DNA of 63,536 nt, filler included, from Pelomyxa schiedti (lineage: Eukaryota; Protista; Evosea), in NCBI GenBank assembly GCA_020536535.1. It is 6 parts of 6 records of this genome, joined end to end, with 100 filler letters (N's around TTAATTAATTAA, not from the genome) between each part and the next. Parts side by side here need not be neighbours in the genome. Positions count along the whole stretch, not along the records: positions 48,839 to 55,363 come from JAHLWZ010001414.1; 5 more parts are not named here. One strand, given 5' to 3'. The notes under the pieces were generated by a model, which saw only the letters and a list, made by a program, of their open reading frames with translations, ran no database searches and was not told the DNA's origin. Both the position numbers and the translations under genes were made by a program. This document shows, piece by piece, positions 48,839 to 55,363 of this stretch; the stretch's first letter is position 1; every line of letters starts with the position of its first letter.

Positions 48839-49545
48839 GGGAAGCACATTGGTGTGTCTGTTGGCCGTTGGCGTGCTGCAAACTGTGTGCACACTGTTTT
48901 CCCAGAAAAACGCTCGTTTTTTGATCGTGTGCACACCGAAAAAGTTTGGGCAGTCCCAATCATAAGCCGATGCGAAACGAAATCGGTCTGTGGCAGCGGC
49001 ACCTAACTTGCACCATATGTGAGATATAATGCTACAAGTAAGGTTTCACAAACCTTGTGATTGACTTTTCGAGAGGAGCGTGCAAGCTTCGAGGAGTGGC
49101 CTTGGTGGGTTTTGGCTGGGTGCATAACAGCAGGTGTGGTCACACTCCCACTGGCATTAACAAGGTCCCCACCCTCAACCCTATGCTGTAGATCTGACTA
49201 CCGCGGTCGCGACATGATCTCGCCGTACGTGTTACTTCTTCCCCCTTTGGTGTTTATTATGTTTGCGGTTTTTCATTAATAATTATTTAATTATTAGATA
49301 TTCCTGATGGCATGTTTTGCCTGCCAAACTCCAGACACCAAAATTTCGTTTTGCCGTAAAATCGCGCCCATTGCGGAAATTTGCGTATCGGAGTGCACGG
49401 AGCGCCAGCAACAGCAGCCAGTAGGGACAAAAAACTACAGTGGTTTGTCGGCGGATGCTACCAATGAGGGGATAGAAGAAAGTCGTGTTATGGTGATAAT
49501 GAACGCGGAAAGGGTTCCAGCACACGTAGTACGGAAAGCATGTAA

Positions 49546-52080
49546 AGAAACCGACATATTTGGCGAAGTGTAAGTTACACTTATGGGAAGGGTGCAGTGG
49601 TGTACGAGGGGCAGTGGGAGCGAGGAAACTTCCATGGAAAGGGGACTCTGAAATCAGGGAAAAACGACATGTACGTTGGCGATTTTGAGAATGGCAAAAG
49701 GAGTGGACAGGGAACGATGTTTTTTGGTGATGGTGGGAGTTATATTGGTGAGTGGAGGGATGACCTGTTCCAAGGACATGGGGCACGACTACTGGCTAAC
49801 GGTGACACATATATCGGAGATTGGGACAGAGGTTTGGAAAAAGACAAGAAAGGGTGGAAAGTATGTCACAGTGAGAGTTCTAAGCTGCAGGACGTGGAAG
49901 CTAAGTGGCAGGATGCTGGTGGCTGCAACGAAAGGCTAGTCGAAGCAATTGAGCAAAGAAATTTCGCAGTCAGTCATCTGTCAAGCGTGGAGCTAATCGT
50001 TCTTTACCTCAAGCTGGGAATTGCAGTTACTTCTGTGCTTTCCATTACTCTTTCGTTTACTTTCTATGTCAAACAACACAAAACGAGTTCAAAGGTACAC
50101 CAAATTTTCCTTTTTGAATTTGTTCTTCTTGACATTAAAAACCTAGGACAAGGCGACAGAAGTAGAAAATAGTTGTGTGTATTTAAAGTTTGCTTCGGAT
50201 CACAAACAACAAATAGTTGCGCAACACATACTGCAACATATTCAAGGAGGTATATGGGTAAAGAGACTTCCCCAAGGCACCGAAAAAGAAGTTAAGGTCA
50301 CATTTATGAACAATGAGTTTCAGGAATCTTTCTGCTGCAATTGTCCTTTGGATAAAGTAGGTCCAACAAGGGAAAACCCCAAAAACTAAAAATAAAAAAG
50401 GTTGTAAAGATGTCCATTCAAAACCAATTTGGAGTTGAGGCAGGTCACCAAGAAGTTTATCTTGTGAAGCAAGATGGTGAAGAGCTATTATCGCCTCTGC
50501 TCACCTTGTCTCAGTGCCACATAGATTTATGTACGTGCCATCACTTTATACTTTTATTTCCACCTCATTTTTATAGCTGTTCCTTGTTTGATTAAAGTGA
50601 AGATGAGACCAGTTCCCACAGTGAAGAGAACTGATCTCACCCCTGAGCCCCAAATTGGTCGTGGGTCGTATGGCCGGGTATTTGAGTGTGAGCACAAAAT
50701 AACCAAAGAGAAATTTGCAGTGAAAGAGCTCCACGGCGCACTTGTTTCAGACTACCATATGGTAGAAAAATTCCAACTTCATGAAGCTGAGGTGTTCACC
50801 TTTTGTGCCGCGAAGGTTCCTCTCTCATATTACATAGACTGTTGCGGCCCTGGAACATCCAAACATTGTTAAATTTATTGGAACATGCCCCCCTGCTTCG
50901 GATTTGTGGATCGTTTCAGAGCTCCTTGGTTGCAATCTGAAATGCCTTATTACCAAAGTCTTAGCATTTTAATATCCTTCTATCTAACATCATTAGAAAA
51001 ACAAGTTAAATATTGAAGAGGCAATAGTAGTTTCCTGGGGGATTGCCAAGGGAATGGAGGCGATTCACAGGTTAAACTGGTTTTCATTTTTTAGGAAACC
51101 TAAATCGAGTAGATACAACTATATGCATAGAGACTTGAGTGTCAAGAACATCGTGTTTGATCTCTCTGGAATCCCAAAAATTTGTGATTTTGGTATCTCA
51201 CTGTTTTTTTTTTAAATTTAATCCTTCAAGGAATGGCCCATCAGGTAGTTCCCAGGGACGATGGCATGACATTCATGCCCGGAACTCCCTTTTATATGGC
51301 ACCACAAATGCAGACGGAATACTACACAATTGCTGGTTACATTCTCTTTTTCTGATCCCAATCCAATCAACATTCTCGAAGGTGATATGTGGGCAGTTGG
51401 GATTTTGATTAGTGAGATGATTTGTGGCGAAATGGGTAATAATCAGCCACGGCATCACTCCCTAGCAGAAAAAAAAGCGCGCTCCCTGGAAGAGCAACAA
51501 ACCCATCTTTCCCAGAGCGCCAAAGGTTTTGTTCACCTACTGTTTAGTGTGCTTGCCCAGTAACTGTTACAGAGGAAGTGTGCCGACTTCTCAAAGATCC
51601 CATCTTTGAAGGGAATTCAGGGATTTCTTCTCTTGCTGAGTACTTGGAGAGAAGGGATACTTGCCTGAAAAAGCTTTCTGTGGAGCTCTCTCCCACTTCA
51701 AATCTTTACCCCAAGGCCACACACATTCTCGAAAAAGTGGTAGAATGGTGCCTCTCCGTTGTAGGTGTGCCAGATATCTTTTCCTGTTTCCTTCAACACC
51801 AATTTTTCTGAGTCACACAGAGAAAGAGAGACCACCGTTCAACGCGATTGTGCAACTGCTCTACTGCTGCCTCACCTTATATTATTTTGAGTCTTGTCCC
51901 TCACCATACAGTCCTGACCCCACACCCACAGCAGGCACGAGTGCAAGTACGAGCACAGCACACTCAGGATGGAAGATACCCCCGGCTTACGAGAGTGACA
52001 TCACATCAAGAATATCGACCTGCTACTCCTCCTTGTCCCCTCTCACTGGCAGAGACAAGAAGGGAGAAGAAATGGAGTGA
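49546..52080 (+). CDS. Receptor-like kinase copy 1: MORN repeats, TM, ubiquitin-like domain, protein kinase (HRD intact); 5' end unclear
   Basis: YEGQW..GNFHGKG MORN repeats, TM LGIAVTSVLSITLSFTFYV, VKMSIQNQFGVEAGHQEV, GRGSYG, FAVKE, HPNIV, HRDLSVKN, DFG, PGTPLYMAPQ. Confidence 0.8.
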
Positions 52081-52149
52081 ACTTTCGTGCCCTTGGGAAA
52101 ACTTCCATTTCCGGTAGGCACAAGGGGGAACCGGTTTTACTAGTACAAA

Positions 52150-55007
52150 ATGTTCGCCAAGTTGGGTTGCATCCTCACGGCGGTGGGTGCACTGGCTGCA
52201 CTGTGGGCCGTAATTGTTCTCCGCATCGAACATAAGTTCTTGGATAGTACAGAAGACGGTGTCACGCTCAACGGCTGGGCCAAGGAGCTCTACGATGACG
52301 GCTCAGTTTACGAAGGCCTGTGGCGCCAAGGAACCTGGACAAGGGGAAGTTGGCACCACCGGGCCCGAGATGGATCCATTGTGGCTTACGAAGGCGAGTG
52401 GGCGTGGGCTGGGGCGGGAGTAGGGGCACGCGGGCACCAGCTAAACGGGTGGGGCGCGAAGAGGGTAATGCCGGCAGGGACCCCCTTCACTTATGGGAAG
52501 GGCGTGATGGCGTATGAGGGGCAGTGGCTCCGGGGAAACATTCACGGCAATGGGACCCAAATGTCAGAGGGGGGTGAGATTTACATTGGGGAGTTCAAGA
52601 ATGGTAAAAGAAGTGGGAATGGGAGGGCATTGTTTGCAGATGGTGGGAGTTATATTGGCGAGTGGCGGGACAACATGTTTCATGGACATGGAGCGAGGCG
52701 ACTGGCTACTGGTGACACATATATCGGGAAATGGGACAGAGGATTGGAGCAAGATAAAAAGAATTGGAAGGTATGCCGTGGTGAGAACCCTGGCACAAAG
52801 CTACAAGAGGCAGATAGGCTATTAGATATTACACATGGGCTCAACAAAGAAGCCTTGCAAATTGACAGAAATATATTGAGGATGGAACTAACTATTTTTC
52901 GCCTCAGGCTGGGTTTTGTGGTTGTTTCTGGACTGGCCATTGCACTATTCTTTATTGTGTTCTATTTCAAAACTAAAGTATCCAAACTGATCAAAGAGCT
53001 TGCAGACGTAATTTTTCCCCTTTCTTAGAAGACCACTTAAAGACACCTAGAACAAAGAAAGAATTAAACAGTTATCTGAAACAAACGATTACCTTCAACA
53101 GCAACTTGAGGAGGAAAAAAAAAGTATGGCTATTCGTACATTTGCCATACAAACTACAAATAGATGCACAGCAGAAACTTCAAGAGGAAAAAAGATGTGT
53201 GTACGTTGTACTTACACCTACGTCTTGTAAAATATAGGTAGTTGCTCAGCATATACTACAACATGTTCAAGGAGCGTGGATCCAGAGACTTCCCCAGGGC
53301 AATGAAAAAGAACTCGAAGTCACGTTTCTGAACCACACTTTTCAAGATTTTTTTTGCTGCAGTTGTCCTTTGGAGAAGGTTAAATATCAAAGGAAAAATA
53401 TCTCATCAAAAAAAAGGTTGTAAAGATATCAATTCAAAGTCGGTTTGGGGTTGGTGCCTGTCACCAAGAAGTATATGTAGTAAAGAGGGCTTCTGGAAAA
53501 TATATCGAAGAGCTCTTATCCCCCATGTTCACCTTGTCTCAGTGGCACACCTCTAACTGTACATTCACCTCAATAACTTTACACCTTCACCCCTTTTTAC
53601 AGTGGCGCCATATCCTATACTTGTTAAAATCAAACCCATTCCAACAATGATGCGATCTGATTTCATTACTCTATCTCCAATTGGCCGGGGGACCTATGGG
53701 TGGGTGTATCAGTGTGAACACAAAGGAACCAAAGAGCTACTTGCAGTGAAAGAGTTGCATGGGATTCTTCAACCAGATTACTATTTGGAAAGATTTCAAC
53801 ACGAAGCGGAAGTATTTTATACCTTTTACTTTCCTGCAACTCTCTCATCTTTTGCAGACTATTGCAGCACTTGAACATCCTAACATTGTTAAATTTATCG
53901 GAACGTGTCCTCCCGCTACAGAACTGTGGATTGTCTCTGAACTCCTTGGTGGCAATCTGAGAGACCTTATTACAAAAGTCCTAAACTGTTGGTATCCCTT
54001 TTTCTAACATGAGAAGAAAAAAAAGTTAAATCTTGAGGAAGCAGCAGCAATTGCCTGGGGAATTGCAAAGGGGATGGAAGCTATCCACAGGTTACCTTTT
54101 TTTTTTTTAAGAAAACCTAAAAGTCAAAGACACAATTATATGCATCGTGCCCTGAGTAGCAAGAACATTGTATTTGATTCCTGTGGAATTCCAAAAATTT
54201 GTGATTTTGGTCAGGACTGATTTTTTTATATCAAAGTAATTTCCCTCAAAGGAGTGGCACAGAAAACACATAACATGGCACACATGCCTGGAACTCCTTT
54301 TTACATGGCACCACAAATGCAAACACACCACTATACAATCGCTGGTTTGCTCTCCTCCTTGAAACCACGCAAACATCCTAAAAGGTGACATGTGGCAATT
54401 TGGCATATTGATGAGTGAGATGATTTGCGGTCAAGTTGAGGATAAAACTCACTTAAGAAAGGATACCCGGTCCCTAGAAGAACAAAAAAGCATCCTTTCT
54501 CGTAGCGCAAAAGGTTTATTCTCATCTTTTGTAACTTCCCAGTGAAACACTATTATATCAGATGAAGTTGATCGACTTCGCAATGACCCCAGCTTTTCTC
54601 AAAGGAAGCAAGGAGCTTCGTCTCTTGCCGAATACTTGGGGAGGAGGGACACATGCCTGAAACAAGTTGCCGTAGAGCTGGCATCAACATCAAAATCTTG
54701 CCCCAAGGCCAGTCAAGTTCTCAATAGTGTGGTAGAGTGGTGCCTCTCTGTTGTCGGTATGCGTGCATAGTTTCTTTAAACGGAGTTCACCTGCTACACA
54801 GAGAAGGAGAGACCACCTTTCAATGCAATTGTGCAGCTTCTTTACAGCTGCCTGTCTTTATATTATTGCGAGTCCGGCTCCTTGCACCCACAGTACGACC
54901 TCACAAGTGCTTCATCAGGCTGGCAAACACCCCTTTGCGAGACTGACATCACAGCAAGAATATCAGCATGCTACTCCTCCTTGTCCCCTCTGACCCGCAG
55001 AGAGTAG
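52150..55007 (+). CDS. Receptor-like pseudokinase copy 2: signal/anchor, MORN repeats, TM, ubiquitin-like domain, kinase with HRA
   Basis: MFAKLGCILTAVGALAALWAVIVL, MORN array, TM LGFVVVSGLAIALFFIVFYF, GRGTYG, LAVKE, HRALSSKN (54143-54166), DFG, PGTPFYMAPQ. Confidence 0.8.
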
Positions 55008-55068
55008 AACCAAAAAAAACCATTCTCCCATCACCACCGTTAACGGAGAAAACACAAACCTTTCATTC

Positions 55069-55363
55069 TCAGCGGGAGCTGGCAGCAAACACAGAAAACC
55101 GCGGGCATAGCCCATCCCCGACGGCTACGGAGCCTGGCGCTTCTGCTGCCACCACGACAGGCGCACTGGGCGGTGGCCCTGCCACTGCGGCCGCTACTAC
55201 TTGCACCACCGCACTGGGCGGCGGCGGCGCCGCTGCGTCCCCGCCCGCGGCGTTCGTGGTGGAGGAGACGGCGCGGTTCGGGCCGCTGGGGGCGGCGGTG
55301 GCGCGGTACCGCCACGTGGGCACCGGGGCGGGGGTGGTGACGGCGAGGCTGGCGACGCCGCTG
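55069..55363 (-). CDS. Ala/Pro-rich 3' fragment of a gene cut by the linker
   Basis: GC-rich open frame from the contig end; no domain recognised. Confidence 0.25.

Follow-up and report, generated by a model that had tools for sequence, protein, structure and literature searches.

MORN-repeat proteins of Pelomyxa schiedti as a candidate family of membrane-anchored receptor-like kinases

Can a MORN-repeat array form the exoplasmic part of a eukaryotic receptor-like kinase? This question is raised by two tandem paralogues of the anaerobic amoeba Pelomyxa schiedti (Archamoebae). The window, that is the whole stretch of DNA analysed (63,536 nt), includes the entire contig JAHLWZ010001414.1 (6,525 nt), which carries both genes on the plus strand (Table 1). 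Every element described in the original prediction was found on that strand where it had been placed, and the order of MORN repeats, stalk helix, transmembrane helix (TM), ubiquitin-like domain (Ubl) and kinase was borne out for both copies by Pfam, hydropathy and predicted folds. We consider it reasonably likely (probability roughly 0.6) that these proteins belong to a P. schiedti-specific family of membrane-anchored receptor-like kinases, in which the MORN array and stalk are exoplasmic and the Ubl-kinase unit is cytosolic.

Both copies contain 11-12 GT-AG introns of 38-64 nt at identical positions and phases, and their exons are 74-86% identical at the DNA level, which indicates a tandem duplication. 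GenBank already contains both genes, with names that are uninformative (copy 2, for example, is KAH3731544.1, “kinase fused”), the deposited P. schiedti proteins having been predicted by Augustus, PASA and EVM with transcriptome data (PMC8887013). Translation of our copy 2 exon set is identical to P0014, and the copy 1 set reproduces P0165 apart from one acceptor set by eye (50997 rather than 51006). The stops at 50172 and 53028, which might have separated the MORN-TM part from the kinase, are not real ends: they are encountered only if the exon 1 frame runs past its splice donor and, since they lie beyond this donor, each copy is one predicted gene, in agreement with the shared intron positions and phases and with the deposited proteins. 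The spliced reading frames are uninterrupted, and comparison of the two copies gives dN/dS values of 0.16-0.22 across the MORN, Ubl and kinase parts (dS ~1), with purifying selection across all parts. Intergenic spacers at other P. schiedti loci measure 63-99 nt.

Table 1. Features of the two tandem genes, in positions of the window
Feature	Position	Strand	Basis or remark
Copy 1 gene	49546..52080	+	called gene; database product P0165, 621 aa, starting at ATG 49717
Copy 1 exons 1-6	49717-50094, 50147-50174, 50217-50356, 50401-50530, 50577-50791, 50838-50957	+	exon set vs P0165
Copy 1 exons 7-12	50997-51070, 51113-51192, 51231-51335, 51382-51525, 51573-51764, 51821-52080	+	exon set vs P0165
Speculative copy 1 5' exon	49214..49267	+	by eye: ATG and 17 mostly hydrophobic residues, GT at 49268
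Copy 1 MORN repeats, ~4, array N-terminally truncated	49573..49870	+	Pfam MORN E 1.2e-15; alignment to copy 2
Copy 1 transmembrane helix	50014..50070	+	hydropathy, 19-residue uncharged run
Copy 1 HxxxH helix and predicted Ubl (introns 50357-50400, 50531-50576)	50217..50640	+	family alignment; fold predicted on a paralogue
Copy 1 kinase domain, limits approximate	50645..51860	+	Pkinase E 1.2e-44 on P0165; motif scan
Intergenic spacer	52081..52149		69 nt, copy 1 stop to copy 2 ATG; read from sequence
Copy 2 gene (KAH3731544.1 = P0014, 782 aa)	52150..55007	+	called gene
Copy 2 exons 1-6	52150-53007, 53051-53123, 53164-53196, 53242-53378, 53417-53558, 53603-53811	+	translation = P0014
Copy 2 exons 7-13	53858-53977, 54017-54090, 54130-54209, 54252-54344, 54385-54513, 54562-54756, 54802-55007	+	translation = P0014
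Copy 2 N-terminal hydrophobic segment (residues 5-24), signal anchor or signal peptide	52162..52221	+	hydropathy maximum 2.42
Copy 2 MORN beta-hairpin array (residues 42-209)	52273..52776	+	Pfam; AlphaFold2; Foldseek
Copy 2 stalk helix (residues 218-253) into transmembrane helix	52801..52968	+	hydropathy; predicted structure
Copy 2 transmembrane helix (residues 254-273)	52909-52968	+	hydropathy; predicted structure
Copy 2 cytosolic juxtamembrane charged helix (predicted), two small exons	53051..53196	+	repeat family D15; exon model
Copy 2 HxxxH helix and predicted Ubl (introns 53379-53416, 53559-53602)	53242..53670	+	family alignment; predicted fold of paralogue
Copy 2 kinase domain, limits approximate	53671..54836	+	Pkinase E 2.7e-45; motif scans

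Exon 1 of both copies matches the Pfam MORN family (PF02493; E 1e-13 in copy 2, 1.2e-15 in copy 1). The AlphaFold2 model of copy 2 exon 1 contains 13 strands forming ~6 MORN repeats, with pLDDT mostly 84-94 in the MORN block, dropping to 65-68 at residues 81-100, and its best Foldseek matches are MORN1 crystal structures (6t69, E 1.3e-11). The suggestion that the MORN regions are more diverged than the kinases did not hold, as the shared MORN core and the kinase are 68% and 70% identical in amino acids between the copies and their dN values (0.198 and 0.199) reveal no MORN excess; divergence is concentrated in the stalk and juxtamembrane linker (31% identity each). Nor do the two genes correspond throughout, since the first ~110 residues of copy 2 are without counterpart in copy 1. 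A coiled coil after the TM, claimed for both, is substantial in copy 2, where it has grown by an internal repeat (the juxtamembrane exon ends form a direct repeat of family D15 with a spacing of 73 nt, 53096-53128 and 53169-53201), but amounts to only ~9 residues in copy 1.

The N-termini of the two copies require separate consideration. Copy 2 residues 2-31 form a predicted helix, an in-frame TAG lies two codons 5' of the ATG, and residues 39-210 are conserved with the paralogue P0018; the adjoining stop and this conservation indicate that the hydrophobic N-terminus is genuinely coding. In copy 1 a conserved, open MORN frame extends upstream of the annotated ATG 49717 as far as 49546, and the 47 codons 5' of this ATG have a dN/dS of 0.20. 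Homology to copy 2 begins at ~49573, where it breaks off abruptly, and no homology to the copy 2 N-terminus was detected in the DNA upstream. For the speculative 5' exon of copy 1, the sole phase-compatible acceptor located by eye ends at 49590, giving an intron of 323 nt.

The segment preceding the kinase, originally described as Ubl-like, matched no Pfam family in profile searches, including any beta-grasp family, and its predicted fold agrees with ubiquitin-like domains. The model has the order strand, strand, helix, strand, strand, strand, with pLDDT of 74-81 in the core blocks; its mean pLDDT is 66.6, and the paralogue sequence used to build it includes 14 residues translated from intron read-through. 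The top Foldseek matches and the VIA-align matches examined were all ubiquitin, SUMO, UBX or other beta-grasp proteins (Z 7-8.4, rmsd 2-3 A across 72-89 residues), the best being Ubls of the TBCE/TBCB, USP and SUMO types rather than RBD or PB1 domains. We thus predict a ubiquitin-like (beta-grasp) domain on a model of moderate confidence. An HxxxH...CxxC motif is conserved in, and specific to, the Ubl-kinase family.

The kinase, a divergent eukaryotic protein kinase, begins ~20 residues after the Ubl and is followed by a conserved C-terminal tail. Its pieces are found in the correct order over the downstream exons of both copies. Copy 1 retains every catalytic motif in the motif scan (HRD codons at 51126-51134), whereas copy 2 has HRA in its catalytic loop, the codon GCC (54149-54151) taking the place of the Asp encoded by the other 12 of the 13 family members. 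Copy 2 also has the longest tip branch (0.35, as opposed to 0.08-0.21 in the other three membrane-bound members). Given HRA in place of HRD and the fastest evolution, copy 2 is probably a pseudokinase; the HRA codon could nevertheless be an assembly error, because only one base differs (A to C) and the assembly was made from amplified single-cell DNA.

Sidedness was assessed from the helices and their flanks. The internal TM of each copy (TM2) is a single uncharged, strongly hydrophobic run of 19-20 residues, and copy 2 has a second run at its N-terminus (TM1); this combination of N-terminal signal or anchor and one internal helix recurs in the unlinked paralogues P0164 and P0018. The N-terminal segments of P0014, P0164 and P0018 comprise 14-21 residues, are not conserved in sequence, and are flanked by basic residues on the N-side and acidic residues on the C-side. 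For TM2, each of the four members has more Lys and Arg in the flank next to the kinase than in the flank next to the MORN array, although the difference is small in two (P0014 and P0018). Cysteine accounts for 0.3-1.2% of residues between the two helices, compared with 3.2-3.7% in the cytosolic parts of the same proteins and 1.8-3.5% in the corresponding regions of paralogues lacking a membrane helix. In line with the positive-inside rule and with the depletion of cysteine, the topology that we predict as most likely places the N-terminus inside, the MORN array and stalk on the exoplasmic side (cell surface or lumen) and the Ubl-kinase unit in the cytosol, hence our designation receptor-like kinase. 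Several observations count against an exoplasmic array: the MORN region contains 1-2 N-glycosylation sequons and one conserved cysteine, and annotated copy 1 is without a signal sequence; a folded N-domain of ~100 residues before a single helix would tend to be retained in the cytosol. The N-terminus of P0170, which has no internal helix, is also weakly hydrophobic, which shows that annotation noise can produce segments of this kind.

Searches recovered the Ubl-kinase module from P. schiedti alone, in 13 members, of which four paralogues on three contigs have the membrane-bound architecture. These form a clade (support 100/100) apart from the helix-less MORN, LRR and ankyrin paralogues. In eight of the 13 the kinase is not separated by a membrane helix from the N-terminal MORN, LRR or ankyrin repeats and, because these are the majority, the clade looks to be derived from a cytosolic kinase. 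The helix-less paralogues (P0166-P0172, P0282 and P0283) share the HxxxH helix, Ubl, kinase and C-terminal tail at 35-40% identity, and most have N-terminal MORN repeats. They differ in having no internal membrane helix, no N-terminal hydrophobic segment except in P0170, a catalytic loop that in most is HRDLSSNN rather than HRDLSSKN, and a position on the opposite side of the tree, whose midpoint rooting is for drawing only.

Similar architectures occur elsewhere. In junctophilins, whose structures are among the Foldseek matches, a MORN array likewise precedes a long helix and then a membrane-spanning one, but the latter serves as a tail anchor at the C-terminus and the array is cytosolic, whereas the Pelomyxa proteins continue for ~500 residues of Ubl-kinase and have an N-terminal signal before the MORN array. 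A ubiquitin-superfold domain also adjoins the kinase in RAF (RBD), PB1-kinases (MEKK2/3), IKK/TBK1 (ULD) and doublecortin-like kinases, in which it functions in partner binding, dimerisation or regulation; the Pelomyxa Ubl differs in showing no sequence similarity to Pfam beta-grasp families. The ectodomains of Entamoeba TMKs consist of Cys-rich, CXXC-type repeats, in contrast to the Cys-poor MORN array and pre-kinase Ubl of Pelomyxa; searches for relatives of the Ubl-kinase module brought up no Entamoeba protein. The E. histolytica TMKs (such as PATMK and EhTMKB1-9) possess an extracellular domain, one TM and an intracellular kinase and, like the proposed Pelomyxa proteins, are archamoebal receptor-like kinases in large lineage-specific families (PMC2211552, PMC2880585). 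Apicomplexan TKL kinases and pseudokinases (for example Plasmodium pTKL) have MORN motifs N-terminal to the kinase in one polypeptide (PMC6544628, PMC4177888). pTKL lacks a signal peptide, membrane helix or Ubl and has SAM and other domains, and no sign of specific kinship with the Pelomyxa family was seen. Bacterial Hanks-type kinases from metagenomes (P0030, P0048 and P0131, the last on an intron-free, bacterial-type contig) have one TM between the kinase and a long C-terminal MORN array, which in P0030 is extracytoplasmic to judge from the Big_2 Ig-like domain that follows the helix. Their order (kinase-TM-MORN) is the mirror image, they are prokaryotic and lack a Ubl, and the similarity is limited to the MORN repeats; this is analogy, not family membership.

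Placement of the same proteins, with the same sidedness, in internal membranes (ER, nuclear envelope, phagosome or symbiont vacuoles) is rather unlikely in our estimation. The MORN array would then be a luminal structural, dimerising or tethering module instead of a ligand-binding surface receptor. No sequence feature singles out the plasma membrane; on the other side, a non-systematic look revealed no retention or sorting motif. Foldseek ranks the MORN1 structures highest, and the crystallographic work on MORN1 is said to have reassessed lipid binding and shown the arrays to form dimers. In P0018 the MORN array is separated from TM2 by a coiled coil of ~190 residues, which is awkward for the preferred reading if an uncleaved TM1 sits in the same membrane; together with such a TM1 it would suit a lumen-spanning or membrane-parallel layout. 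P. schiedti harbours prokaryotic endosymbionts (PMC10579272), while the many surface transmembrane kinases of Entamoeba, described in the papers cited above, favour the cell surface; a cytosol-facing kinase fits either site and is not decisive.

It is improbable that the MORN array is instead cytosolic, with the internal helix as an anchor and either a luminal kinase or an N-terminal stretch devoid of targeting function. All characterised eukaryotic MORN proteins have, to our knowledge, a cytosolic MORN array, and the eukaryotic structures matched here (MORN1, radial-spoke proteins, junctophilins and SETD7) are all cytosolic or axonemal; the nearest paralogues outside the clade, in which no membrane helix divides MORN from kinase, the missing signal sequence of annotated copy 1 and the weak TM2 asymmetry of P0014 and P0018 point the same way. 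Against this, with just one helix between them, MORN array and kinase necessarily lie on opposite sides, a luminal Ubl-kinase of such high Cys content would be odd, Cys depletion is confined to the inter-helix region, and the N-terminal segments of three paralogues have the charged flanks given above. We find it barely credible that the fusion is a gene-model artefact, with separate MORN-TM and Ubl-kinase transcripts or a contig made chimeric by whole-genome amplification. The assembly does derive from multiple-displacement-amplified single cells (PMC8887013), and the homology break at ~49573 could be a chimeric junction, which would affect only the 5' end of copy 1. The position and phase of the first intron are kept in both copies, however, two other loci have the same fused architecture, an independent Ubl-kinase gene would have neither start codon nor promoter space, and selection and open frames extend over all parts.

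Under the preferred reading, that of receptor-like kinases with exoplasmic MORN arrays, the full-length form (copy 2, P0164 and P0018) would comprise a signal or anchor, ~6 MORN repeats, a helical stalk continuous with the TM, the HxxxH helix, Ubl and kinase. The clade may have arisen when a helix-less MORN-Ubl-kinase gained a signal sequence and a stop-transfer helix. Outside, the array and stalk may bind a partner or mediate dimerisation, and a signal could pass via the helix to the Ubl-kinase unit, resulting in phosphorylation; that the array binds a ligand is purely conjectural. Copy 1 would have lost or replaced its N-terminal ~110 residues while keeping all catalytic motifs, and copy 2, with its entire receptor part, may act as partner or scaffold in a division of labour. 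A literature search found no paper on MORN-TM-kinase proteins, in keeping with the description of this architecture as possibly undescribed. Because it was found in one species only, is nested among helix-less paralogues and is preceded by bacterial kinase-TM-MORN proteins, we regard it as adding a new kind of ectodomain to the eukaryotic receptor-like kinases, not as a new class of system. A MORN array outside the cytosol would, if true, be unusual for a eukaryote.

The tandem genes on this contig are best described as encoding lineage-specific receptor-like kinases with a predicted MORN ectodomain and a juxtamembrane ubiquitin-like (Ubl) domain, for which a role as receptors is plausible. 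They are the only two genes called on contig JAHLWZ010001414.1 of Pelomyxa schiedti, a free-living anaerobic archamoeba, and their DNA reveals them to be tandem duplicates whose blocks of 74-86% identity alternate with short diverged segments. The assembly (GCA_020536535.1) was obtained from amplified single cells, with genes predicted by Augustus, PASA and EVM together with transcriptome data, and introns in this organism average 7.4 per gene and are nearly all of the GT-AG type (PMC8887013). A six-frame listing of open reading frames in the contig gives fragments only, and a scan for bacterial promoters and terminators was uninformative, having been built for bacteria. A bacterial-style reading, in which the stops at 50172 and 53028 would end separate frames, was rejected: once GT-AG introns of 38-64 nt, identical in position and phase in the two copies, are removed, the reading frames are open throughout and the stops fall out of frame, being met only when the exon 1 frame runs on past its splice donor. 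The exon set for copy 2, with exon choices corrected against the deposited protein, translates exactly to P0014, and that for copy 1 gives P0165 except at one acceptor, which was corrected by eye; both models include a small intron of 39-42 nt. The architecture originally noted is real, and each copy is a single gene unit, as had been claimed.

Features of the tandem kinase genes and their contig (positions along the window)
Feature	Copy 1	Copy 2	Remarks
Entire contig JAHLWZ010001414.1			48839-55363; 6,525 nt, carries both copies
Gene	49546-52080 (+)	52150-55007 (+)
Product	P0165, 621 aa	P0014 (KAH3731544.1), 782 aa	copy 2 deposited as "serine/threonine-protein kinase fused"
HxxxH motif	50225-50240	53250-53265	approximate, alignment A2
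CxxC(P) motif	50330-50345	53352-53367	approximate, alignment A2
33-nt direct repeat		53096-53128 / 53169-53201
GCC codon at HRD aspartate position		54149-54151
C-terminal tail motif	51960-52060	54905-55000
GC-rich segment		52139-52588	part of copy 2 exon 1 missing from copy 1
GC-rich 3' edge			54989-55363; contains the 3' edge ORF

The MORN motif (PF02493), a ~23-residue YxGxW...GxG unit that occurs in tandem and forms beta-hairpins, is found in exon 1 of both copies above the gathering score (E 1.2e-15 in copy 1 and E 1e-13 in copy 2). The AlphaFold2 model of copy 2 exon 1, for which family members served as the alignment, has a helix over residues 2-31, 13 beta-strands spanning residues 42-209 (pLDDT of 10-residue blocks mostly 84-94, with a dip to 65-68 at residues 81-100) and a single long helix at residues 218-285 that takes in stalk, membrane segment and juxtamembrane region. 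When the strand array was searched with Foldseek, MORN1 crystal structures were retrieved (6t69, 6t68 and 6t4d; E ~1e-11, 30-34% identity). The internal membrane helix (TM2) is an uncharged run of 19-20 residues with a hydropathy maximum of 2.0-2.6 in all four proteins that possess it (copies 1 and 2 and the unlinked paralogues P0164 and P0018), and in the copy 2 model it is predicted to be helical and continuous with the stalk; hydropathy locates a second hydrophobic helix at residues 5-24 of copy 2. Exon-by-exon Pfam searches placed kinase fragments in the correct profile order in the later exons of both copies, and the full products match Pkinase (PF00069) at around 1e-45 (E 1.2e-44 for copy 1, E 2.7e-45 for copy 2); all full-length searches were run with the deposited proteins. 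Pfam and hydropathy thus bear out the original observation of MORN repeats, one TM helix and a kinase in both copies, with an extra N-terminal hydrophobic segment in copy 2. In copy 2, each of the two small juxtamembrane exons finishes with one unit of a 33-nt direct repeat (79% identity, 73 nt apart), splice donor included. Copy 1 lacks this internal exon duplication, by which the charged helix became longer.

A Ubl-like segment had also been claimed ahead of the kinase. Pfam searches with both Ubl exons of both copies, taken to E 1, returned nothing but a chance-level match to DUF7076 (E 0.14), and the Ubl region of the full database proteins is without any Pfam match, so that membership of the Ubl, UBX, PB1, RA and RBD families was not found. 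Because an intron interrupts the Ubl in both copies, the homologous segment of an ankyrin paralogue (L004:3376-3759) was folded instead; this segment carries 14 intron-derived residues, from a 42-nt intron that is in frame and stop-free, which appear as a low-confidence loop. In the model (mean pLDDT 66.6, core blocks 74-81), two strands are followed by a helix and then by three further strands. Its best Foldseek match is the Ubl of TBCE (1wjn, E 4e-4; TM-score by target length 0.64-0.73 over several chains), and ubiquitin variants, SUMO, UBX and the USP15 UBL are further top matches. In VIA-align, an independent search, the rows inspected were ubiquitin-superfold domains throughout (Z 7-8.4, rmsd 2-3 A, 72-89 residues), although the tool rates such Z values as common. 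Despite this, the uniformity of the matches makes it reasonable to assign the segment to the ubiquitin-like beta-grasp fold; the claimed Ubl lacks a Pfam family but its predicted fold, modelled on the paralogue, superposes on ubiquitin-like domains. Ten or more of the 13 members retain an HxxxH pair in the short helix that leads into the Ubl, as well as a CxxC(P) motif in the loop following the domain's second strand, and this four-ligand pattern could represent a candidate zinc site that staples the helix to the Ubl.

The kinase domain is divergent. It matches both Pkinase and PK_Tyr_Ser-Thr, its best solved relatives are a mixture of EGFR, MST1/2, PKG and PKC (80-95 bits), and the TKL label on some paralogues is the depositors' naming. 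All motifs of a catalytically competent kinase, from the Gly-rich loop, the VAIK Lys and the alpha-C Glu to the HRD Asp, the catalytic-loop Asn and DFG, are present in copy 1 (GRGSYG, AVKEL, HEAE, HRDLSVKN and DFG). The HRD aspartate, found in the other 12 of the 13 members, is replaced by Ala in copy 2 (HRALSSKN), with the remaining motifs and the fold kept, and copy 2 has the longest tip branch in the family tree (0.35, compared with 0.12 for copy 1). Copy 2 is probably a pseudokinase, as predicted from this substitution, unless the GCC codon is an assembly error. Apart from copy 2, members of the membrane-bound clade have the catalytic loop HRDLSSKN, or HRDLSVKN in the case of copy 1, and most of the other paralogues have HRDLSSNN. 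A conserved tail motif after the kinase, with 85% DNA identity between the copies and the wider-family consensus IS.(C/W)(L/Y)SSLSP, may be a putative docking or regulatory site.

Between the copies dS is ~1, and dN/dS is 0.16 for MORN, 0.20 for the Ubl and 0.22 for the kinase, with higher values in the stalk, helix and linker; within the shared core, the suggestion that the MORN regions are more diverged than the kinase regions is not borne out. Homology begins abruptly at ~49573, and the first ~110 residues of copy 2 are without a counterpart in copy 1; a tblastn search for them upstream of copy 1 found nothing. Two ORFs in this upstream region (49061-49279 and 49307-49573) gave no Pfam match, and a hydrophobic open frame at the contig's 5' edge (48840-48905) was dropped, the first helix of P0018 matching it only at E 14. 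The annotated start of copy 1 (49717) is probably too far downstream, since the 47 MORN codons that precede it are open, have a dN/dS of 0.20 and retain residues in common with P0018. The true 5' end of copy 1 could lie in an unannotated exon, for which 49214-49267 is a speculative candidate, in a frameshift that connects to the 49307 ORF or in an amplification chimera. Two segments of the contig have a GC content of 59-65%, the remainder of both genes being 36-49%; the second of these contains an unannotated Ala/Gly-rich, GC-rich open frame that runs off the contig. Pfam returned nothing for this frame, which may resemble the start of an M16C presequence protease, and a PDB sequence search gave one chance-level match only.

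A search with the post-membrane part recovered 11 P. schiedti proteins before bit scores fell from 241 to 134 into generic kinases. With the Ubl segment alone as query, every match was a P. schiedti protein, and two of these were additional. All 13 members contain the Ubl (11 by the family HMM and two as Ubl-segment matches). Searches with exon 1 recovered KAH3731544.1 itself and P0018, with the N-terminal, MORN and stalk regions in common, and otherwise generic MORN proteins. A word search with exon 1 alone, which is limited by its length window, gave only generic MORN proteins, and the ESM Atlas only bacterial MORN clusters with scores below threshold. Copies 1 and 2, P0164 and P0018 form a clade (support 100/100) characterised by the internal membrane helix. 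Among the remaining nine, none of which has a membrane helix ahead of the kinase, eight contain MORN, leucine-rich or ankyrin repeats; P0167 lacks both a Pfam repeat match and any membrane helix. Derivation of the membrane-bound clade from a cytosolic MORN-Ubl-kinase is the simplest interpretation, a direction of change that we infer from a tree rooted at its midpoint only. At the loci of P0164 (L006:366-6850) and P0018 (L007:331-7354), the upstream neighbours match in identity, order and orientation (an MFS_1 transporter followed by an Aminotran_4 gene), which implies that segmental duplication of 7 kb or more also contributed to the spread of the family. The double-kinase MORN paralogue P0166 is adjoined by genes for another MORN-kinase and a MORN/RING-finger (zf-C3HC4_3) protein (L005:1-1306 and L005:6358-7754). 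MORN-domain genes have clustered and proliferated in this genome.

Since a single helix separates the MORN array from the kinase, the two would lie on opposite sides of the membrane. N-terminal hydrophobic segments (TM1) are present in copy 2 (20 residues), P0164 (14) and P0018 (21), and none was found in copy 1; their sequence is not conserved, and targeting signals typically are not. The hydrophobic N-terminus of copy 2 is real, because an in-frame stop lies two codons upstream of its ATG and the next ~100 residues are conserved with P0018. TM1 is flanked by basic residues on its N-side and acidic residues on its C-side, and TM2 has more Lys and Arg on the kinase side than on the MORN side in four of four proteins. 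Cysteine makes up 0.3-1.2% of the region between the helices, 3.2-3.7% of the Ubl-kinase parts of the same proteins and 1.8-3.5% of the homologous regions of paralogues without the helix, a pattern that, in a small and phylogenetically non-independent sample, fits a move of the inter-helix region to an oxidising compartment. An NGT sequon is present at residue 134 of copy 2. In combination, the single helix, the hydrophobic N-termini, the flank charges and the cysteine depletion favour a predicted topology in which the N-terminus is inside, the MORN array and stalk are exoplasmic and the kinase is cytosolic; we judge the chance of this to be roughly two in three, and the exoplasmic side may be the cell surface or a lumen, both being compatible with the sequences. 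A junctophilin-like tether, by comparison, consists of a cytosolic MORN array followed by a C-terminal tail-anchor helix, whereas the helix here is internal, with ~500 residues after it, and the MORN array comes after an N-terminal hydrophobic segment. One candidate eukaryotic analogue, the oomycete protein P0070 (Avl9, MORN, several membrane helices, kinase), was set aside, as its N-terminal Avl9 domain, taken as cytosolic, points to a MORN array that is cytosolic too.

No account of MORN-TM-kinase proteins was found in the literature. MORN repeats and kinases are combined in apicomplexans without a membrane helix (PMC6544628; PMC4177888), and Entamoeba possesses many transmembrane kinases (PMC2211552; PMC2880585), with ectodomains of other kinds. 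Among the best MORN matches were Hanks-type kinases of bacteria in which a kinase, one membrane helix and a MORN array follow one another, the mirror image of the MORN-TM-Ubl-kinase order in P. schiedti. Three metagenomic examples (P0030, P0048 and P0131, the last at L008:6001-8751) comprise a kinase, one membrane helix, a Big_2 domain in one case and at least 10 MORN repeats; the Big_2 Ig-like domain of P0030 is located between the helix and the MORN array, and the contig encoding P0131 is bacterial-type and intron-free. MORN arrays do, on this evidence, occur extracytoplasmically on prokaryotic transmembrane kinases. The bacterial architecture is apparently undescribed, and implies a predicted periplasmic or extracellular MORN sensor.

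We tentatively propose, with a probability of about 0.4, that Pelomyxa made a true receptor kinase from a cytosolic MORN-Ubl-kinase. Addition of a signal sequence and a stop-transfer helix would have placed the MORN beta-hairpin array at the cell surface or in a vacuolar lumen as a ligand-binding or dimerising ectodomain. The tandem pair would then comprise an active kinase (copy 1) and, as a full-length receptor, a pseudokinase (copy 2), and might sense prey or the prokaryotic symbionts of the amoeba. The weight of this proposal is limited by the occurrence of the family in one poorly studied amoeba that is hard to manipulate, and everything beyond domain content is inferred. Eukaryotic MORN repeats are treated as cytosolic modules associated with membrane or cytoskeleton; the receptor reading, if true, would make this the first eukaryotic MORN domain on the exoplasmic side. 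Should the predicted topology hold, MORN could also serve as an exoplasmic receptor ectodomain, paralleling the uncharacterised bacterial kinase-TM-MORN proteins, and the Ubl with its HxxxH...CxxC pattern beside the kinase, together with the kinase/pseudokinase pairing, would be testable regulatory features. With helix-less paralogues in the same genome, the family would then provide a compact and datable case of a receptor kinase born from a cytosolic one.
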